NCBI GenBank assembly: GCA_025558095.1
Contig: JAIVFI010000022.1
Coordinates: 372,001-436,000, forward strand
Reading direction: 5' to 3'
DNA: 64,000 nt
Origin: Hyaloraphidium curvatum SAG 235-1
Lineage: Eukaryota > Fungi > Monoblepharomycota
Positions 4,825 to 52,961 of the stretch are shown in pieces. A program made the translations under genes and the position numbers. How positions within the stretch are numbered: position 1 is the first letter of the stretch; every line of letters begins with the position of its first letter. The notes beneath the pieces were generated by a model. It worked only from the letters and a program-made list of their open reading frames with translations, did no database searches and was not told the DNA's origin.

Positions 4825-7800
4825 ATGTCCGGCTCGGGCGCAGCTGCGATGCCCGACGCGAAGTATTTCCAGCGTGGAAAGATCCAGGAGCTGCGCGCGG
4901 AGCTGGCCGCCGACAAGCGCGACACGAAGCACGCGAAAAAGCGCGTCGCGCTGAAGAAGGTCGTTGCAAACATGACCATGGGCAACGACATGTCGCCTCT
5001 GTTCTCGGACGTGCTGGGGTGCATGCAGATTCCCATTCTGGAAATCAAGAAGATGGTGTACCTCTACCTCATCCACTACTCGAAGAGCAAACCGGACCTG
5101 GCAGTGCTCGCCATTAACGCCTTCATTCGGGTGCGCTTCATGCCGGGAGAGCGATACGGGGCGGGGCACGGCATTAACCAGCTCCCTCGGGGCTACGTCC
5201 CAGGACTCCATTGACCCGAATCCCCTCATCCGAGCTCTGGCAGTCCGCACGATGAGCTACATTCAAGTGGACCGGATCATTGACAGCCTGACGGACCCGC
5301 TGCGGACGAGTTTGCGGGACTCGGATCCCTACGTCCGGAAAACGGCAGCGATTTGCGTTGCCAAGGTGTTCATGCACAACCCGACCGTCGTAGAGAGGGA
5401 AGGCTTCCTTGATCTGCTGCTAGATCTTCTGAACGACTCCAACGCTACCGTGAGTTTTGGGCGGCGATCCGCTGGGAGAGGGCTAAAGCAAGCAACCGGG
5501 CCGCGCCAGGTTGTCGCAAATGCCGTTGCTGCGCTCACGGAAATCTCGGATCGCTCGGAGGGCTTCGAGTTCACCATTGACATCGCAATGGCAAACAAGC
5601 TCCTCACTGCCATCAACGACTGCTCGGAGTGGGTGCCTCACGTCGCGTCGCCGTGTCACGCTGACCAGGGGGCTGTGGCTAGATGGGGCCAGGTCTACAT
5701 CCTGGAAGGGCTTCTGTTCTACGTCCCGCAAGAAAGCCAGGACGCAGAACTCCTGGCAGAGCGGGTACTCCCCCGGCTTCAGCACGCCAACTCCGCGGTC
5801 GTCTTGTCTGCCGTCCGCGTCATCCTCTACCTCATGAACTACATGTCGCTGGAGGAAAACGTAGACAGTCTCTATCGCAAGATTGGACCCCCGCTGGGTT
5901 TGTGCCTCGCGGCTTGGGTCGTCGTTGTCTCGCACTCAGACCTCGTGCCAGTTACCCTCCTACACAACAGCTCGGAAGTTCAATACGTTGCCCTGCGGAA
6001 CATCCTCCTCATCATCCAGAAGCGGCCGGACTTCCTGAAGAACGAGATGAAGGTCTTTTTTTGCAAGTACAACGACCCGATCTACGTGAAGCTGGCCAAG
6101 CTCGAGATCATGATCCGCCTGGCCAACGATGCCAACGTCGCGCAGGTTCTTTCGGAATTGCGGGAGTGGGTTGCCGGCCACTGCAACGGAATCCGGCGGC
6201 TCTGACTTGCCTGCAGATATGCCTCTGAGGTCGATGTCGAGTTCGTCCGCAAGTCGGTCCGCGCCATAGGCCGCTGCGCGATCAAGATCGACAGCTCCGC
6301 AGACAAGTGCATCCAGACGCTGCTGGATCTCATTCAGACGAAGGTCAACTACGTTGTTCAGGAGGCCATCGTGGTGATCAAGGCACGTGGTGTGCCTCTA
6401 CCAGGCGATCCCGGCTGACGGCCCCCCGCACCAACCAGGACATTTTCCGCAAGTACCCTAACCGCTACGAGAGCATCATCTCTACCCTCTGCGAGAACCT
6501 CGACAGCCTGGACGAGCCGGAAGCCAAGGCTTCGATGATCTGGATCATTGGCCACTACGCCGACCGGATCGAGAATGCCCACGATCTCCTGGCGCAGTTC
6601 CTCGAAACCTTTAGGGAGGATCCCGCTGAAGTGGGGCCTTCCCGTCGCATGGTCAAACACGCGCTAATGTCTCGATTGTGCCGCAGGTCCAACTAACGCT
6701 CTTGACCGCCGTGGTCAAGCTCTTCGTGCGGCGGCCTACAGTGGGACAGGACCTGGTGCCTAAGATGCTGAAATGGGCGACGGAGGATCTCGACAATCCC
6801 GATGTCCGGGATCGGGCCTTTATCTACTGGCGCTTGTTGTCGACGAACCCAGTTGCGGCCAAGGTTTGCTTGCCTCCATTTCCGGGCCGATTTCTTTCTG
6901 ACCGTGATCCCAAGGCCGTTCTCTTTGCTGACATGCCCACCATATCCACCGAGACCGATAACCTGGAGCCAAGCTTCCTGGACGACCTGCTGCTCTACGT
7001 TTCGAGCCTGTCGTCCGTTTACCACAAGCTCCCGACCACATTCATTGGGGGCATCAAGGCGCGAAAGCTGGCGCCATCCAGGGCACTCAACCTCATGTAC
7101 CGAGCTGCTGCGACTCTGCGTTTCGACGGCCCCATTGGCAGGTTGGATTCGAACCTTTTGGCTGCAGTGCTTTGGCTGACCAAACGATATTCCAGCGCGC
7201 CAGCTGCCAGCAGCGCACTTTACGGCGGGGGCAGCACCTCGAACCCGTACCAAACGGATGGGCTTCGGCCATACGGGGGGGACAATGTCGACGAAGGGGA
7301 CGAAGGAGATCAGGACATTGGCGGACAGGACGGAGCCGCCGCGCGGGATCAAACCTACCTGTCGTCCATGATGGGAAGCATGGATCTCGGCTCTCCGGTT
7401 TCGTCGCCCTCGTCTCCGAACCCGATGTATCCGCCTCCTGGATCGGGGAATGCCTCTGCTCCTGGACCCGGCCCGTACGGATCTGGGCTCGATTCGTTGT
7501 CCCGCACGGCGTCTGGATACGGGCTGGCGGCCCAGCATATGTATTCGACCGGCCAAGCGCAGGCTAACAACGGCCTTTCTTCGGACTTGCTTGGCCCAAG
7601 CTCCCGGAGCTCGAGCATGGACTCCTTTGCACAGAGCCGCGGCCCGCAATCGGACCTTTTGGGAGGCCAGCAATCTGGCCAAGGGACCGAATTGCACCCA
7701 GCGTACGAAGGCTTGTCTGCCCTCGCAGCCGCTTCGGGCCTTGGAGACAATGCGTCGACGCGGCCCAACCCACCAGTTGCGGCTCCTGGTGCATTGCCGC

Positions 7801-45079: not shown

Positions 45080-45838
45080 GTCTGCAAAGAACAGAGCCAG
45101 CAAGCTAGTGGACCATCCTCTCCTGATCCTCTTCCTCCTCAGACACCATGCCCAGATCCATCCCTTTTGCACCATTGGCCTCCATGAAAGCAGTGATGTC
45201 GTTGATGAACAAGATGAAGAACAGTGATGAGAGTGGGTCCCCTTGCTTCACTGCAGTTAGGAACTTGATGAAGTCCGACTTGGTGCCGTCCTCATCCCGG
45301 AGCCTTCCCCACACCCGCCCGAACGCCATCTCAAACATGTCAACAACCTGTTTGGGTACTCCCATCTCCTCCAGCTTCTGCCATAACCTGGGGCGCTCCA
45401 CCGTGTCAAAAGCCTTTTATTTTGCCTCCCTGCCATGCATGTGGTCATTGCTCTCACCGGGTTCTAGCACGGGTTGACGTGAGCTGGTAACTGGTCGGAT
45501 GAAAAGACATGGAGACACCAGTGGTGGACAGTGGCGTGGTGGATGAAGTGGCATGGGCTCCGTTGCATTGCGGAACTATATACAGTATAAATGGGTAAAG
45601 GTCACCATAAGGTCACCTCGAGAATCACCTGGGTCCGCCCGCCAAACCGCGGGGGCCGAAGTGACATTCCAAAGCTCCGAAACAAACCGTTGCCGTTCCC
45701 TCCCCAGGCCCGAACGGCCAGTGCCGCTTGGCACTGACGCTTAGAGAGGACCATAGATCCCCTCCCGGCCCTCGGTCGGGCACGGACTGTTCTGAGCGGC
45801 GAGCTTTTGGGACTCGGAGCCGGACACTTGACAGGACG

Positions 45839-48800
45839 ATGTCGGACAGCCGCACACCGGCTTCCGGGCCCGGATCCCGCCCCGCGGCGAAGGCGCGGGC
45901 TCCGAAGAGTGCGCCCCAGGGAACGCCGGGGGCTGGAGAGGGACGGAGGAGGCCGCGGGCATCGCGGGGTGGTGCGCGGACGCCCACATCGCAGGACGGC
46001 AACACCGGCTCGGGGACGTTGGAGCTGCCCGCGCCGACCCTGCCCGCGCGACGGAAGACCAAGACGAAGGCAGAGACCGGCACTCGGGCCAAGGCGGCGG
46101 TAAGTTTGTGCCGGAAGCCCGTCACGGGAACTCGACGCTGACCTGTTCTTGGCCCTCGGCCACGTGCAGGTCGTCTCCCCTACGGCGCCGTCTGGAAGTG
46201 CTTCGGAAGCTCCAAATCCGAAACGAAGGAAGACGGCAGACGGGGCAGCTCTGCCTGTTGCCGGACAGCCCTCCCCGCTTCGGCCTTCGACGGCAGCACC
46301 TTCCACCTCCCTCAACGACCCCAACGCGCCCGCTACCTCAGCCGGAGACCCTCCTGGGGACGAATCCGAGATTATTCTCCCCCCTGCCGGCCTGCAACTT
46401 GTTCTAGGCGGGCTTCGCTTGCAGATTCAGAACGCCGTACCTATCCCGTCGGAACTCTCGCGCCGGGCCCTCGAACAGCTCGATAGGCTGCGGCAGGACC
46501 AAACGACGACCACGAGCTCTCTTTACCGGCCGCAGATGACTGAGTACCTGCAGTTTTGCAAGACGGAGAAGCTCCCGGCATGGCCTATTCGGGGGGACAC
46601 AGTGGCCCTCTTCGTGGAGTACCTGTCACGGAGGCCGAAGAAGACGAGCGGCAAGAAGCGATCGAGGGACGAGATGGAGGAGACCGAGGAGGAGCGGGAA
46701 CGCCGGGAACAGCAGGCCAACGAGGAGCAGGAGCTCGGTCTTGGCAATCAGCACGGCGGACAACCGCTTTCCGAACAGCCGTTCGCGACCAAGACCGAGA
46801 CCCCGGGCGTGAGCACCGTGATTTTGGCCATCACTGCGCTCGAGTGGTTCCGCCTGCGGACGCAGGACTACTTTCCGCAGACCACTTACCCCGAGGCGCA
46901 CGTCAAGCTCCGGGATTGCTACGCTGTGAAGGAGCTGGAGAAGCTGCTTAAGGTGCTCGAAGTGGACAAGAAGAACTCCATCGACAGAATCAAAGCGCCG
47001 GGCGTTTTATCTGATACCTACTCGGACTCTGAGTTTCTGGCCGTCGCACAGTACCATCTGACAAGGGGCCGGATCTACCGCAACAAGAGGGTGCGCATGA
47101 CACCATTTCAGGAGATCCTGAACCTGCGTGCACGCACACTCCACCTCATCAACGGACTTGTCGGGTTCCGCTCCAGCAACGGGCGGGCGATCGAATTCTC
47201 GGACCTCTTTGTGAAAGTCGTCCAGCTCGGTCACGGAGAAGACCCGGTGACAGCCAAGGTAATGTACGGCTTGCCTCGCCGCACGAGAAAGCTGACGTTC
47301 CTTCCCCGCTTCCGGCACAGGCGTACTGCATCCTCGCGGACAACGGCAAAACGAATCGGCACGGCGGGGTCGACATTTTCGGCATGCTCCGCAACTACGA
47401 CGTGCGCCTGTGCGCCGTCGCCAGCCTCGCCATGCAAATGTACGCGCTAGATCGACTGCAAGACTTCCAGTGGCCAGATTGCGCCCCGGTCTTCGATTCC
47501 CTCACGACCAAGGTCGGTCGCCGCCCGTGGGTGAGGCTCAAGGTCTTTCCCCGAGCCAGCAACCCCTACGAGGAAATGTCCTACAACAGTGAACCGTGCT
47601 TTGCTCGGTCGAGGTGAAGATTTGGCGCCTGATGAATCCTTCGACGCAGCGCACTACCAGCAGGTCAAGAACGCGCACGACGACTTGGCCATCGGCATCA
47701 CCAAGGCCACGCACGCATGCAGGCAATACTCGGCCACAACATCCGTAGCGCGCGGCGCCAACAAAGCGGATGTCAAGGACCAGCATGGCTGGGACAAGAG
47801 CATGCTCAACCTCTACGACACCGGCTCGCTCCCCCTCACGCACCTTGTCGCTGTCGCCGGCGGGAACCCTCACAATTTGGCGTCCTATTTTCTTCCTCGC
47901 GCCGAGCTCGGTGGGTACCTTCGGCCAGCGCATGGAGCTGCTGGATGCTGACTGTCCTCTGATGCAGTGCCCCCGGCATCTCTTGTGGCCGAGACCTTCC
48001 AATTCGCAACGCGGGAGCTCGCGAACTACGCGAGCCGACTGCAGCAGGACCAGAGCAAGTTCCTCGACCCAACGTGCAAGGGCTTCCACGAGCTTGCGCG
48101 GGACTTGGCCACGGCGAGCATGCCCATCTCGAGACGCACACTTGCGCATGTACTTACTTCGGTCCCCCGCCAGGTCTTCTTCCAAGACGCGCCAAGCATG
48201 ATCGATCTCTTGTCTGGAGGGCGTTTCGGCAATGCCGAGGTGCCGAGGGAGCTCTGGTACGCGGGACTCCCGCTGATCTACCAGACGGAGCACTTCAAGT
48301 CGGAGGTCTACATCCACTATCACAACCAGGCGCTTGCGCAGCTCGAGGCCATCAAGGTCTCCCGCGCCAACACGCTCGCGCCCAAAGACTACGTCGACGC
48401 CATGGTCCCGCGGTTCCAGCAGCTGCAGTCGCAGCACGCGCAGCTGGAGAACCACGTCGTCACCGAGATCTCGGGCGTAAAGGAGCTCGTCAACGAGCGG
48501 TTCGACGAGATCAAGGAGCTCTTCCTCTCGCAGCGTGGTGAGCTGCCGTCGTCGGCCCGCCCGGTGAACGCCCGCTCGGTGAACCCGTCGGCGATCGTGG
48601 AGAACCCGACCCCCTCGGCGCCAGAGCGGAGGGCGAAGCCGCGGCTGCGTCATCGTCTGCGGCTGCGGCTGCAGCCGCCGCTGAAGCAGCCGCCGCGCAG
48701 AGGCGCCGCGAAGCCGAGGATCGCGCACGGAGGGAGAAGGAGGAGGCGGAGAAGCGAGTGGCGAAGGCCGAGCTCCTGCAGGAGCACGGTGCTCGCCTCG

Positions 48801-49201
48801 GGGCCCTGGAGCTCGTCTAGTACGAGCAGGGTCGGCGCTGGGTGCCCGCGTACCCCTTCCCTTGGGTCGTTAACCCGCGGGACATCTGGGACGAGTACAC
48901 GATCGGGGCCAAGCCGGATCCCGGGCGCCCTCGCCTGATCTCCATCCGGGAGCTCAACACCATCTTTGGCGGATCATGGACCCGCAACATTCCGACACTG
49001 AAGCAGCAGAAGAAGCGGAGGAAGCTGGTGTGCGACGAGGTGCAGCGCCTCCAGAAGGTGAACCATTGGTCCGAGGAACAGGCTCTCCAAAGCCTGTGCA
49101 ATTGCTTCCATCGCAATGGGAAGTGGACGGCAATTACCAACGTGTACAAAATCTTGACCGAGGAGCGCAAGGCACGCGGAGAAGCTGAAGCAGCGGAGTA
49201 G
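45839..49201 (+). CDS. CryptonF-type tyrosine recombinase (Ndc10 domain II-like) with C-terminal GCR1_C-like domain; in-frame TAG at 48818 before the last domain
   Basis: Introns 46100-46169, 47259-47320, 47589-47649, 47911-47967 and probably 48538-48602. Catalytic set GFRSSN (R), NGKTNRHG (K), KATHACR (HxxR), HGW (W), MLNLY (Y); LRNYDVRLCAVASLA; C-terminal DIWDEYTIG...SIRELNTIFGGSW...KRRKLV. Confidence 0.85.
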
Positions 49202-49613
49202 GGGAGCTGGCATGGTGCGGCGGACGGCTTCGGGCGGGATTCTTGGCCACGGCCTCTTGACAATCTTAAAGATCGTTGATGTATTCTTCGTTTTGCAATC
49301 TTCGTTGGTCCCTCAATGTCGAAGCTTGGTCTGGGGAAGCCGAAAACGTCCTTTTCGTAGTCGTTTTGTCGCGCCTTAGCGATCAACCCTTTGGTTGCTC
49401 GGGTGACAGTTACACAAACTCGGCCAATTCTCTCACTCGCGACCTCGTGACGGCCAGCTAGAGGCCTTAACGCGGCTCTCCTGAGCCGTCGCCATCGCCT
49501 CGTGGGGCACTGGGACCGTGGGACTCTCCGCGGGGCAGCTGCCGGCGGAAAAGTCACGTCGGGACCACTCCGCTCCGAGCACGAATCACTTGCCATTGGA
49601 GGGGCTGCCGGTC

Positions 49614-50692
49614 ATGGCCGCCCGGGAAAAGCCGGCGCTGAAGGCAGTTGAAGAGGCGCTGGAGTCCTTGGTGGCCCTCGCAAATCCTCGGCCGAGGGAT
49701 GGGCGCTGGATTGCATACGTGCGCAAGTCGAAGGACGACAATGCGAACAACATCTCGCTGCAGGACCAGGAGGGACTGGTGCGGCGCTGGGCGGCGGACA
49801 ACAAGAGGGAGATAGTCGCTGTCTGTAGCGACGTCCTCAGCGGCACCTACCCGCGTGGTGACGGGAGGAAGCAGCGGCCCGGACTTGAGGAAGCATTCGG
49901 GAGGCTCTCTCGCGACGCAACGATCGTGGGCCTGGCCGTTGCCCGCGTGGATAGGCTCGGCAGGAACGCTGCTTTCATCCTGGCGGACGTGGAGGAGCTG
50001 AATCGCATGGGCAAGAACTTTGCCAGCGTCGAGTTTCAAGGACTTGTGCACGGGCCCTTGAATCCAACTTCCAACATGGCGTACATGTTTCTCGTACTAG
50101 GGGCCCTAACGGCGCACACTGAGCGCTCCTCTGTGAGTGCTCCGCGGGGCGACAGCAGCGTCAGCGCAGTCTCTGACCTCGCAGGCACCCACCTCTGCCT
50201 CGCAAGATTGCTGCGCGCACCGCCGACTCGGCGAAGCAGAGATCAACGCGCAACATCGGTCAGTCCAGGTTCTCACCCTTCGGGACCCGCTTCCGAGCTC
50301 GGTTCCCTGGAGGAGAGGTTCGCGAGGCGGTGGAGTCGGGTGAGCTCGCTGGCCGGGAGTACCACGGAACGAAGCGCGCACCGCTCGAGCTTGTGATCCA
50401 CGAGCCCGAGGCCGAGCAAGCTGCGATTCTTGCGCCTTACCTGACCAAGCTTGACGGGGAGCAAGACCCTCAGGAAGTGCGTCATGGGTCGTCGCCGGCA
50501 TTCTTGCTCGGTGTCCTACGGGAGCGAGGAAAGGACGTGGATCATCGCGCCAAAGGGGTTCAGCGAGGGTACCTGGATGCCTCCTCGCTTGCTCGCAATG
50601 TTGCAAAGGCCGTCAAGTACCTGACTGAGCGGGAGGGGAAGGAGAGGTTCGCGGAGCGCGTGCTGGCGGCGTGGAAGGGGCCGGGCATGTAG
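49614..50692 (+). CDS. Serine recombinase (resolvase/large serine recombinase-like), ~334 aa, one spliceosomal intron
   Basis: IAYVRKS (nucleophile Ser at 49728-49730), SLQDQ, DVLSG, RPGL, ARVDRLGRN. Removing intron 50133-50206 (GTGAGT...AAG, phase 0) restores ERSS|IAARTA...SPFG...LVIHEPEAE. Confidence 0.88.
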
Positions 50693-51579
50693 GAAGCGTC
50701 CAACGGAACGCAATTCGTTCTATTCTCCATCTTCAAATACCCATATCCCGGCCCTGTAACCCCGGCAGCCGCGTTCTGGCAGATGCAAAGAAGCTGATAC
50801 GCGCCCGTGCGGGTTCCCCCGTACGCAACAGGGTTGCGGCCTGTAGGACCTCTGGCAAACAAGAGGGCAATGCTTCTTTTGATTGCCGAACTTTCTCAAC
50901 GGTCCAATCTTGGCTTGTCGGAGGTAACGGCCAGGGGTGAGGGAGCAACGCGTCCGAAACAACGAAAGTGCCCCAGCTGTCGCCAGGAACCTCGGAGCCG
51001 CGATCCTTCTAGCCAACGGCATTGGCCAGCACCATGAAGGTCTGCTACCCCTGATTCCCTGGCCAGTCCTCCCCCAGCGGAGAGCGTGGGGGCCGACATC
51101 CAGCGCCGCGGCGGGGACCGGCAGCGAACCCCGTACAGCGGCCTCCAAGGGCGGATCCAGCCGCGCAATCCTAGAGAATATGTTCCTCGAGAGATGCTTG
51201 CGGCGCCGCCTGCCTCCAAATAGGCATGCGAAGCCGAGGAAGTGCCTCGGACTCGCCGCCACCGCGAAGGTCCACGGCCCGGCTCCACAAACAGCTCCAG
51301 GAAACAATGGGCCCGGCATCCCCGTAGAAAACAGCGTAGCCAAAGTTGCCGCCGAGCCAGCCGAGCTCGGCGAGGGGCATTCCACGAGGAACACCGCAGG
51401 GCCCCTCGAGGCCCGGGGTGCCGCTCACACACAAGGTCCCCGGCCGAGCGCGTCCGCCGCGCCCACCGGCACGTGCGGCGGTACTTGTTGCGACGCTGCG
51501 CGGGCCGGCGCGCGGCCGGGCGGAGAGTGGGACGCGCACGGGGTCGCCGACCTTGTCGGCCTATGAGGTGAACTGCCGC

Positions 51580-51655
51580 GTGACTTTTCGGAGCTATACG
51601 GTATAGCTCCAGAAAGTCACCTCTGCCAGCCGGCAGTATAGTTTTGAAAAGTCAC
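51580..51655. other. 41-bp palindrome plus an extra half-site, candidate recombination site
   Basis: GTGACTTTTCGGAGCTATAC-G-GTATAGCTCCAGAAAGTCAC (51580-51620, 18 of 20 arm positions pair); third half-site GTATAGTTTTGAAAAGTCAC at 51636-51655. Confidence 0.75.
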
Positions 51656-51746
51656 CCGTATTTTTGATAGCCGGGTTAGGCGCGCGCGCGGGGTGACCTG
51701 GGTGATCTAACGTGACATTTAAAACACACATATGTATGGGCAACAG

Positions 51747-52961
51747 GGTCGGCAGCTTCAAGCTTCTGGGGTACCAGCTCACGTCAACTGGGCGGAGCAA
51801 GGACCATGTGCATGGCAGGGAGTATAAGATGAACGCTGCTTATGGGCTCTGGCTCCGCGACATCAGGGAGCAGCCTGGGATGAGTCCTGACCTCCAGCTC
51901 AAGCTCTACAGCACAAAGGTCAAGGCAGTGGGCCAATATGGGAACCCGTTCATTGTTGAGATGCCGAAGGAGGAGTACCTTGCCGGGGAAAGCACCAGGG
52001 ACAAAGTGACATGCATGGCTCTTCGTGCCGTCACTCATCTGCCCAAGTCTACCTCCCTGGCCTGTCTGTATGCGATCACTGGCCAGTACCCCCTTGCAGT
52101 TCATGACCACGAGTCGGCACTCAAGTTCCTCATGCGCATCAAAACAGCGGATCCTGCACTGTGCCTACTTTACAAAGAGCTCAAGATCGAGGCACTGAAG
52201 GGGTCCTGGAACTGGGCTGCCTTCCTGAGGGAACTACTTGTATACTATGGCGGCGAAGATGGGAGGGAGCTGTGGGAGAAGGACACTTTCTCATGGCCCA
52301 AGGAGACTGTGGAGACTCTTGTGAAGGGCAAGTTCAGGGAGATCAATGCCCAGAGGCTCAAGGACAACGACAAACTGCACTTTTGGAGGATGTGTGACAT
52401 GATCTTGATCCGGGTGGAGAAGCACCGGAGGGATGTCCAAAAGTTGCTGTGCTCTACCCACGACCTGGAGGTGGAGACAGGCAGGCACCAAGGACTTGAG
52501 GTGCAGCAGAGAACGTGCAAGCATGACCCTGAGCACATTGGAGACGAACAACACTTTCTGTTTCACTGTTCAGCAAATGCGGAGCGGCGCCAGAAGCTGC
52601 AGACTAGATTGGAAGCACTAGGCCGCGAGTGGAACATGGAGACCTGGCTCTGGGCTCTTAGCATCAAGGAGTTCGAGCCCACGATCAAAGCAAGGCGGCA
52701 GAAGGAGAAGGCCCTCAACTCCATTGCCAGCTTCATCTCAAAGTCCATGAAGGACAGGAAAACTGGGAAAATGAAAAAGACACAAGACGACGATGAACTT
52801 TGCAATTAGCAGCAAACTCATGGTGTAACAGCGGCCAAGCCAGGGGCAGGTCCGGGTCACCAATACTATTCTTGAGGTCCGGGTCACCAATACTACTATT
52901 CTTGTAACAGCGGCCAAGCCAGGGGCAGGTCCGTCCGGGTCACCAATACTATTCTACTATT
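51747..52961 (+). mobile_element. 5'-truncated LINE, copy 2 of the same family, with a reiterated 3' end
   Basis: RVGSFKLLG (RT thumb) to HDLEVETGR...GDEQHFLFHC, stop 52809; near-identical to copy 1; possible TSD CAACAG at 51741-51746 and 52962-52967. Confidence 0.9.

Follow-up and report, generated by a model that had tools for sequence, protein, structure and literature searches.

A compact, intron-bearing serine recombinase carried by transposons in the fungus Hyaloraphidium curvatum

The serine recombinases described to date in eukaryotes are of the IS607 type (PMC3627910, PMC2715888), and a review of September 2026 recognized IS607EU as the only known eukaryotic transposon that encodes a serine recombinase (PMC13565253). 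The present analysis concerns a gene of a different kind, located at positions 49,614–50,692 of a 64,000-nucleotide stretch of DNA (the window) from the monoblepharid chytrid fungus Hyaloraphidium curvatum SAG 235-1 (GenBank assembly GCA_025558095.1, contig JAIVFI010000022.1; C22:372001-436000, where C denotes a contig of the assembly). The locus is interpreted as a functional gene of the nucleus, encoding a compact site-specific recombinase of the serine type, a conclusion that is well supported and, with regard to what the gene is, held with high confidence.

In the TnpA protein of IS607, a MerR-like helix-turn-helix (HTH) lies ahead of the catalytic domain, and nothing follows helix E (PMC6188088, PMC2715888), whereas the fungal protein begins with the catalytic domain, which is followed by a domain of 150 residues. 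The protein is thus not of the IS607 type, as originally predicted, because the catalytic domain comes first and there is no N-terminal MerR HTH. What it shares with IS607 and IS607EU, including the copies found in S. kluyveri and giant viruses, is the presence of a serine recombinase in eukaryotic mobile DNA and, as in IS607, of repeated motifs near the ends of the element, with no long terminal inverted repeats. No match to TnpB or Fanzor was found among the larger open reading frames (ORFs) scanned between 45.4 and 51.8 kb of the window, a scan that did not include every frame.

The small resolvases and invertases (gamma-delta, Tn3, Sin, Hin, and Gin) have the same catalytic core and helix E as the fungal protein (Z scores of 13–15), whereas their C-terminus is an HTH_7 domain of approximately 45 residues, in comparison with approximately 150 residues in the fungal protein. 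The large serine recombinases (Bxb1, PhiC31, TP901-1, and the Listeria LI/A118 integrase) have the same domain order as the fungal protein, and share with it the P-[FY]-G turn that opens the DNA-binding domain, followed by the motif L-x-L/V-x-x-x-x-E. The fungal protein is shorter, however, with approximately 334 residues in comparison with 450–700, and has neither a zinc ribbon nor a coiled coil. It is also nuclear, intron-bearing, and located on eukaryotic transposons, whereas the large serine recombinases are found on phages or integrative and conjugative elements.

Gene, intron, and fold of the recombinase

The gene is read from the forward strand in two exons. Exon 1 (49614–50132) starts with an ATG at 49614 and comprises 173 codons, which encode a leader of 32 residues and the catalytic domain, as far as the first half of helix E. 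This is followed by a spliceosomal intron (50133–50206) of 74 nucleotides (nt), GTGAGT...AAG, in phase 0, which falls within helix E, and then by exon 2 (50207–50692), in which 161 codons and a TAG stop provide the remainder of helix E and a C-terminal domain of approximately 150 residues. The frame is open throughout both exons, and the spliced sequence has 334 codons. The exons were searched and folded separately, and P0004, a full-length paralogue from the same genome, was used as a stand-in for the whole protein.

The original prediction of a complete catalytic domain, with no MerR-like HTH upstream, was confirmed. Exon 1 matches the Pfam profile PF00239 (Resolvase) over residues 33–171, with an E-value of 1.3e-14 and a score of 54.9 bits (cut-off 23.3), and contains the motifs YVRKS (R37 and S39), SLQDQ, SG, RPGL, VDRLGR (D113, R114, and R117), and TERSS. 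In an alignment of 49 sequences, R37, S39, Q52, S76-G77, R88, D113, R114, R117, and E170-R171 match near-invariant columns. The 32-residue leader that precedes this core matches neither the MerR nor any other HTH profile in the Pfam search of exon 1, and takes the form of a low-confidence helix in the AlphaFold model of P0004. A chance resemblance is excluded by the profile score, the four further copies in the genome, and the existence of a family of homologues.

The genome was searched in the 31.9-Mb assembly of 55 contigs, in which the PF00239 genes belong to only two families. Family 1 has four loci: the window copy, two copies placed head to head on contig 9, one copy on contig 2, and a 3' fragment on contig 14. 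Family 2, to which P0004 belongs, is made up of paralogues with 38% identity to family 1. The gene had been treated as solitary in the original prediction, which was not sustained, given that it is multi-copy and borne by transposons, and this alters its presumed purpose. In the comparisons of the window gene with the other family-1 copies, the ratio of nonsynonymous to synonymous substitutions (dN/dS) is 0.10–0.12 in exon 1 and 0.18–0.34 in exon 2, and is summarized as 0.10–0.25 for the two exons, low values which indicate that the coding sequence mattered during the diversification of the family. The GC content of the window is approximately 60%, and that of the gene equals its surroundings. 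The Rfam scan of the 64-kb window returned zero matches.

The predicted intron is borne out by its canonical ends, by the colinearity of the joined exons with full-length homologues, by a position shared with relatives, and by a contig that skips exactly the interval 50133–50206. In a multiple alignment, the joined exons (ER-SS followed, across the splice, by IAA-RT) are exactly colinear with the homologues (ER-YN-ARI-RT); the intronless homologues used for the comparison are uninterrupted metagenome ORFs (L035:245-1321 and L037:142-1173). Family 2 has a 55-nt GC..AG intron at the identical codon (L007:1942-1996), and the GenBank protein P0004, of 332 residues, uses this predicted splice exactly. 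A metagenomic relative, L039, has a 68-nt intron (GTAAGC...CTACAG), also at the same codon. All the genomic copies of family 1 keep the intron, with the GT and AG conserved, and no intron-free copy of the family was found in the assembly. Among these copies, the intron has accumulated indels and approximately 16% substitutions, more than the flanking exons, and each of the five differences seen across the 34 nt that open exon 2 is synonymous.

Run X1, the one public run in which the sequence occurs, contains a contig with a depth of 906, which joins 50132 to 50207 across GT..AG ends, with 101 nt on the shorter side of the joint. This run has no coverage of 46000–46590 or 47182–48166, and these gaps, together with the lack of an intronless genomic copy, are the reason for reading the joint as a spliced transcript, which it very probably is. 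A second, weak joint in X1, at 50305–50381, leaves out 75 nt bounded by CT..AC, which reads as GT..AG on the minus strand, and has only 28 nt on its shorter side; it may represent an antisense spliced transcript or an artefact.

Two other gene structures were observed. In the Chytridium lagenaria homologue, an 83-nt GT..AG intron (L033:11531-11613) lies three codons downstream, with further interruptions upstream, and this shift could be due to either intron sliding or an independent gain. The GenBank model of the contig-9 copy (KAI9026854.1, or P0001) uses a later acceptor, at approximately window position 50360, plus a second skip, and thereby loses the SPFG motif along with half of helix E. 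This joint was not seen in X1, and the deposited model is probably wrong, given that both homology and X1 favor the acceptor at 50207.

An alternative interpretation is that the locus is a decaying, functionless relic of a transfer from a bacterium or phage, in which the apparent intron would be a neutral indel or frameshift. Both exons are intact in the window copy alone, with frameshifts, stops, or truncations at three of the four family-1 loci, and the region itself is a nest of dead transposons, in which an abundant repeat resembling a long interspersed nuclear element (LINE) forms the right flank of the window copy from 51742. A relic would not be expected, however, to have two open exons and a low dN/dS, exact colinearity after the splice, a spliced contig, and an intron position common to three lineages, nor would the four annotated family-2 genes be intact, so that this interpretation is considered highly improbable, and a functional recombinase gene is preferred.

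The resemblance of the C-terminus to that of the large serine recombinases, which was also part of the original prediction, is upheld by structural alignment with the Bxb1, PhiC31, and LI integrases, while the sequence profiles are silent. Exon 2 reads IAARTADSAKQRS...GQSRFSPFGTRF...LELVIHEPEAE, also contains SPFGTRF and VDHR, and has zero cysteines. The AlphaFold model of the full-length paralogue P0004 has a mean predicted local distance difference test (pLDDT) score of 90 and a predicted template modeling (pTM) score of 0.74, and its best Foldseek matches in the PDB are Bxb1 (9iu2) and the serine integrases 9dxd and 9dxf. When aligned by VIA-align, 246 residues of this model fall on residues 1–278 of Bxb1 9iu2 (Z 15.7) and 251 residues on 9dxd (Z 14.4), and both alignments span the catalytic domain, helix E, and the recombinase domain. 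The AF2 (AlphaFold 2) model of window exon 2 alone, with a pLDDT of 76, has strands as well as helices. Its top six matches among 48,161 chains are the recombinase domains of PhiC31, Bxb1, 9dxd, and the LI integrase (Z 4.1–5.0), a modest range of scores with, in this predicted model, a striking specificity for the domains of the large serine recombinases.

The absence of a zinc ribbon or coiled coil is deduced from the lack of cysteines in exon 2 and from the fact that the protein ends approximately 150 residues after helix E. The zinc beta-ribbon profile (PF13408) matches neither exon 2 nor P0004, the HTH_7 profile (PF02796) does not match exon 2, and the C-terminal profile has no meaningful match among the sequences of the PDB. 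The nearest prokaryotic matches include PF07508 in 15 of 49 cases, HTH_7 in one, and MerR in one. A closer look at the ten nearest revealed PF07508 in nine, and several of these ten proteins are shortened, lacking a zinc ribbon and retaining half of a recombinase domain. It is well supported, overall, that the protein is a minimal enzyme of the large-serine-recombinase type, composed of a catalytic domain, helix E, and a fold that resembles the recombinase domain.

A family of zoosporic fungi

Exon 1 was used in an exhaustive HMMER search of 1.84 billion representative sequences, which recovered only 87 proteins at E <= 1e-3, nine of them at E <= 1e-10. The close homologues are found in Quaeritorhiza haematococci, Amoeboaphelidium occidentale, Phlyctochytrium bullatum, Rhizoclosmatium globosum or sp. 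JEL0117, Chytridium lagenaria (two genes), and Obelidium mucronatum (two copies), as well as in metagenome contigs. Family members range from 310 to 370 residues, with G-Q-S-x-x-S-P-[FYH]-G, L-x-L-V-x-H-x-x-E, and H-R-N as common motifs of the C-terminus. In a tree of the catalytic domain, 14 sequences from zoosporic fungi and metagenomes, including those of Hyaloraphidium, form one group that is separate from 58 other matches, with a value of 88 in the Shimodaira–Hasegawa-like approximate likelihood ratio test (SH-aLRT), a moderate support obtained from 139 columns. It is well supported that the family, as sampled, is confined to the zoosporic fungi (Chytridiomycota and Aphelida) and related metagenomic sequences, and an ancestral donor among the bacteria or phages is plausible.

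The intron position common to family 1, family 2, and L039 implies a long residence in eukaryotic nuclei, and this part of the original prediction is reinforced by the relatives of the gene, which form a clade of chytrids and aphelids. A cross-species search for partner genes beside the recombinase (tblastx and blastp) matched only the recombinase itself, plus a weak GCR1_C-like match in L039. A cysteine-knuckle motif (C-x-x-C-G...) was observed near the recombinase in four lineages (L019:7937-8329; residues ~140–170 of P0007; L035:1373-2419 and L037:1944-2924, both on the minus strand), and is fused to the recombinase in one annotation. This short motif may be a conserved partner domain.

The distribution of the family also bears on the possibility that the gene is a domesticated host gene, a bacterial contaminant, or the insert of a giant virus. 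The Amoeboaphelidium homologue adjoins ordinary host genes, and some of the metagenomic homologues are intronless, which would be in keeping with an origin of this type. The Hyaloraphidium gene, by contrast, exists in several copies, some of them degenerate, which are flanked by transposons and lie on contigs hundreds of kilobases long. It has the GC content of its surroundings and contains a spliceosomal intron, while a scan of IMG/VR with P0016, which detects close relatives only, found no viral relative. Contamination is excluded at the window locus, and this group of explanations as a whole has next to no credibility in comparison with a recombinase that resides on transposons of the fungal nucleus.

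Carrier elements and candidate recombination sites

The favored explanation, which is considered to have somewhat better than an even chance of being correct, is that the protein is an accessory site-specific recombinase borne by composite transposons, and descended from the large serine recombinases. The composite in the window is of the Crypton type, and covers approximately 45579–51731 (~6.15 kb), with its left end proposed; it contains a putative tyrosine recombinase, a GCR1_C domain, and, close to one end as is also the case in family 2, the serine recombinase, and the window copy is the only one that holds the proposed left end. The Crypton-like tyrosine-recombinase ORFs lie on the forward strand at 46149–47951, in a broken frame (46149–47450 and 47589–47951). 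They have no profile match and no homologue match, and the second ORF has no match among the PDB sequences. They are 32% identical to a multi-copy element, the ORFs of which match NDC10_II (E 4e-7) and GCR1_C, which is the CryptonF architecture. Downstream, a GCR1_C DNA-binding ORF (48842–49201, forward strand) matches PF12550 with an E-value of 7e-10 on 48842–49198. The upstream half of the window element appears to have the architecture of a CryptonF, which combines a tyrosine recombinase with GCR1_C, and we know of no described Crypton that encodes a serine recombinase. Pfam searches of the neighboring ORFs of both families returned only Resolvase, GCR1_C, and a weak reverse transcriptase match.

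The contig-2 copy shares the Crypton–recombinase junction with the window copy, and in L039 a weakly similar ORF (E 1.8e-4) lies equally far upstream, so that this adjacency is probably present there too. A unit that bears the recombinase, at 49396–51731 on the forward strand, is common to both of the head-to-head copies on contig 9, and the 3' terminus ...TTTAAAACACACAT, at window position 51731, is shared by four copies with four different flanks.

This unit is the basis of an alternative interpretation, in which the serine recombinase would be the transposase of a small autonomous element of approximately 2.3–2.9 kb, made up of the gene and its flanking sites and nested in other transposons, namely the Crypton of the window and the MULE-like element of family 2, and would move in the manner of IS607, through a circular intermediate and a 2-bp crossover. 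The recombinase is the sole component conserved across lineages, the contig-9 copies carry the 49396–51731 unit without the Crypton, and the 3' end of the unit is sharp in four copies. The recombinase-only copies lack a defined 5' end, however, and the arms of the contig-9 pair start differently, at 49396 and 49429, while the Crypton–recombinase junction is common to the copies on C22 and C2, and probably to L039. Insertions of the recombinase alone, with both ends defined, were not found in the assembly.

Three further observations were made at the family-1 loci. In the contig-9 pair (C9:337466-340455), the units lie head to head with a 2-bp spacer, and their arms start at the window equivalents of 49429 and 49396, which suggests that the pair arose by rearrangement and does not represent a defined 5' end. 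The flanks of the window composite at 45426–45489 and 51772–51822 are mutual reverse complements, with 17 nt that match exactly and 28 nt that match at 89%. Both of these flanks belong to the LINE-like repeat, which makes them inverted and not colinear. Cryptons of a separate family, which contain ORFs of the NDC10_II-like and GCR1_C types, were located at C21:155500-161500 (L041), as well as elsewhere on C21, at 613 kb on C22, and on C49 and C2. This family has at least five identical-scoring copies, none of which has a serine recombinase.

The recombinase of family 2 was found solely inside an element of 8.2 kb, near its right end. This element lies at C4:366968-375135 (L019:3899-10000 plus L026:1-2066), has further copies on C34, C9 (~539–548 kb), and C46, and has the ends GCGTGATAT...AAAATCGCC. 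The copies on C4 and C34 are approximately 100% identical, apart from one indel, which suggests recent activity, and the C9b copy differs by 1–5%. The direct repeats of 8 bp that flank the element agree at all eight positions in C9b and at seven of eight in C4, with none at C34. No full copy of the partner ORF without the recombinase exists in the genome. A GCR1_C remnant was considered for family 2, and was rejected, as the frame is full of stops.

On the left, the C46 copy (~158–179 kb) and its flank are 100% identical to C9b, whereas the right part is 100% identical to C34, with a switch at element position ~1100–1600, so that this copy is a chimera, which is either an artefact of the assembly or the product of ectopic exchange in very recent times. 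Given the position of the switch, this swap of flanks was not attributed to recombination at the palindrome of family 2 (see below), a source that was rejected. The interpretation of a small autonomous element is consistent with the fact that the recombinase part of family 2 is approximately 99% conserved between copies, versus approximately 97% for the rest. Family 2 never occurs outside the 8.2-kb element, however, and it is the outer ends of this element that bear the 8-bp duplications.

A site of dyad symmetry with a 2-bp center is the substrate of a serine-recombinase dimer, and candidates for sites of this kind are found in both families. In family 1, the 10-mer GAAAAGTCAC lies on the forward strand at 49548–49557, 57 nt upstream of the ATG, and is a candidate recombinase-binding or regulatory half-site. 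It has three exact copies in the 64-kb window (at 49548, at 51580 on the minus strand, and at 51646), all inside the recombinase unit. The second of these belongs to a palindrome of 41 bp (51580–51620), with 20-nt arms that are 90% complementary and a GTCAC in each arm, which is a candidate crossover or binding site. A third half-site (51636–51655, forward strand) repeats the right arm of the palindrome in direct orientation. Each family-1 copy retains the palindrome, which also occurs in one additional fragment, on C21, and is otherwise absent from the genome.

This fragment (C21:699160-699297, or L042:2661-2798) is 138 bp long and corresponds to window 51489–51626, with the palindrome at C21:699261. 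Its last base coincides with that of the contig-2 copy, both continue into the same foreign sequence, and the junction is situated 6 bp beyond the palindrome, an arrangement that is likely to be a shared secondary event or a capture by another repeat.

The related motif A[AG]GTCACC has seven matches in the 64 kb, five of them in two clusters, at 45599–45617 and, in three copies, at 51614–51699. The first of these clusters consists of two AGGTCACC repeats (45599–45617, forward strand), which lie at the proposed left end of the ~6.15-kb composite, and the clusters appear to mark the outer ends of this composite. In family 2, the site is a perfect 15+2+15 palindrome, GAGTCTATCCAAGGG AG CCCTTGGATAGACTC, which is present in all the copies and nowhere else in the genome (C4:372339-372399, that is, element 5372–5432). 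In the C4 copy, the right half-site occurs two further times, and 278 bp are deleted immediately upstream of the palindrome. The presence of a different palindrome in each family would fit the co-evolution of recombinase and site, with the sites themselves remaining candidates.

These motifs can also be read in favor of a small autonomous element, given that the GAAAAGTCAC motifs lie either side of the gene in the family-1 unit, and that repeated subterminal motifs at both ends recall the ends of IS607 (PMC6188088). The A[AG]GTCACC clusters are located at the outer ends of the composite, however, and not at its inner boundary, and movement as a small autonomous element is judged to be rather unlikely. 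An accessory role on composite transposons is favored, instead, because family 2 always moves as a whole element with target duplications, because the Crypton–recombinase junction is inherited, because the motif clusters would mark the outer ends of the composite, and because there is no recombinase-only insertion with two defined ends.

Proposed role and significance

In the proposed mechanism, dimers of the recombinase would bind the family-specific palindrome of their own element, together with its repeated half-sites. The targets would be GAAAAGTCAC and A[AG]GTCACC in the window element, and the perfect 15+2+15 palindrome in family 2. Two sites would then be recombined through S39, by the usual 2-bp staggered cleavage. 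The service provided to the carrier would be accessory, through the integration or resolution of circular or multimeric forms, whereas primary mobility would come from the transposase of the carrier itself. By analogy, Tn3 is a transposon with a second recombinase that acts on an internal site, and the fungal enzyme may play a comparable part. To our knowledge, neither Crypton nor MULE-like (Mutator-like) elements form cointegrates.

A number of points weigh against an accessory recombinase of large-serine-recombinase descent. The C-terminal domain in isolation resembles the large serine recombinases at only Z ~5, the model of exon 2 alone has no significant Foldseek match, and exon 2 has no Pfam match, PF07508 included. 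The hhalign comparison of the fungal C-terminal profile with the prokaryotic recombinase domains gave an E-value of 0.025 and a probability of 2%, and its pairing, which is not significant, falls on the expected L-x-LV-x-H-x-x-E segment. The RNA label of run X1 is a guess. The only intact family-1 copy adjoins a broken tyrosine-recombinase frame, and the window element may be immobile now. Cryptons in this genome spread without a serine recombinase, and the palindromes occupy different positions relative to the gene in families 1 and 2.

In family 2, in turn, the large partner ORFs have no Pfam match or sequence homologue, and the MULE/Mutator plus DUF6729 label of the partner comes from language-model features alone. 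Features of the same type place DUF6729 and KDZ-associated cysteine clusters in the neighbor of the intronless L037 recombinase, and all the MULE, DUF6729, and KDZ assignments are treated as leads only. The activity of the enzyme, the binding of the sites, the circular forms, and the accessory role itself are inferred from the sequence.

The proteins of this family are already present in GenBank and UniRef under the automatic name "Resolvase", and no description was found, among the papers searched, of the nature of the family, its intron, its distribution, or its transposon context. While the sequences are not new, then, the family represents a second, undescribed kind of serine recombinase in eukaryotic mobile DNA. 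Its presence in two unrelated transposon backbones suggests that it is an accessory recombinase traded between elements. Fanzor has likewise been traded between elements.

A stronger interpretation is that the zoosporic fungi possess a second class of eukaryotic mobile elements reliant on a serine recombinase, independent of the first and derived from the large serine recombinases instead of IS607, in which the compact enzyme of 330 residues would be a transposase or co-transposase that synapses the palindromes or the A[AG]GTCACC-bearing ends. This is possible, although it is considered doubtful; if true, it would mean that the enzyme is a serine integrase naturally adapted to the eukaryotic nucleus.

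The accessory recombinase favored here raises the question of what a Crypton or MULE-like element gains from a resolvase-like enzyme. A small serine recombinase adapted to the nucleus, with short palindromic candidate sites, is also a candidate for genome engineering. The family would add a second lineage to the eukaryotic transposons that carry serine recombinases, and would indicate that enzymes of this type can persist for long periods in nuclei.

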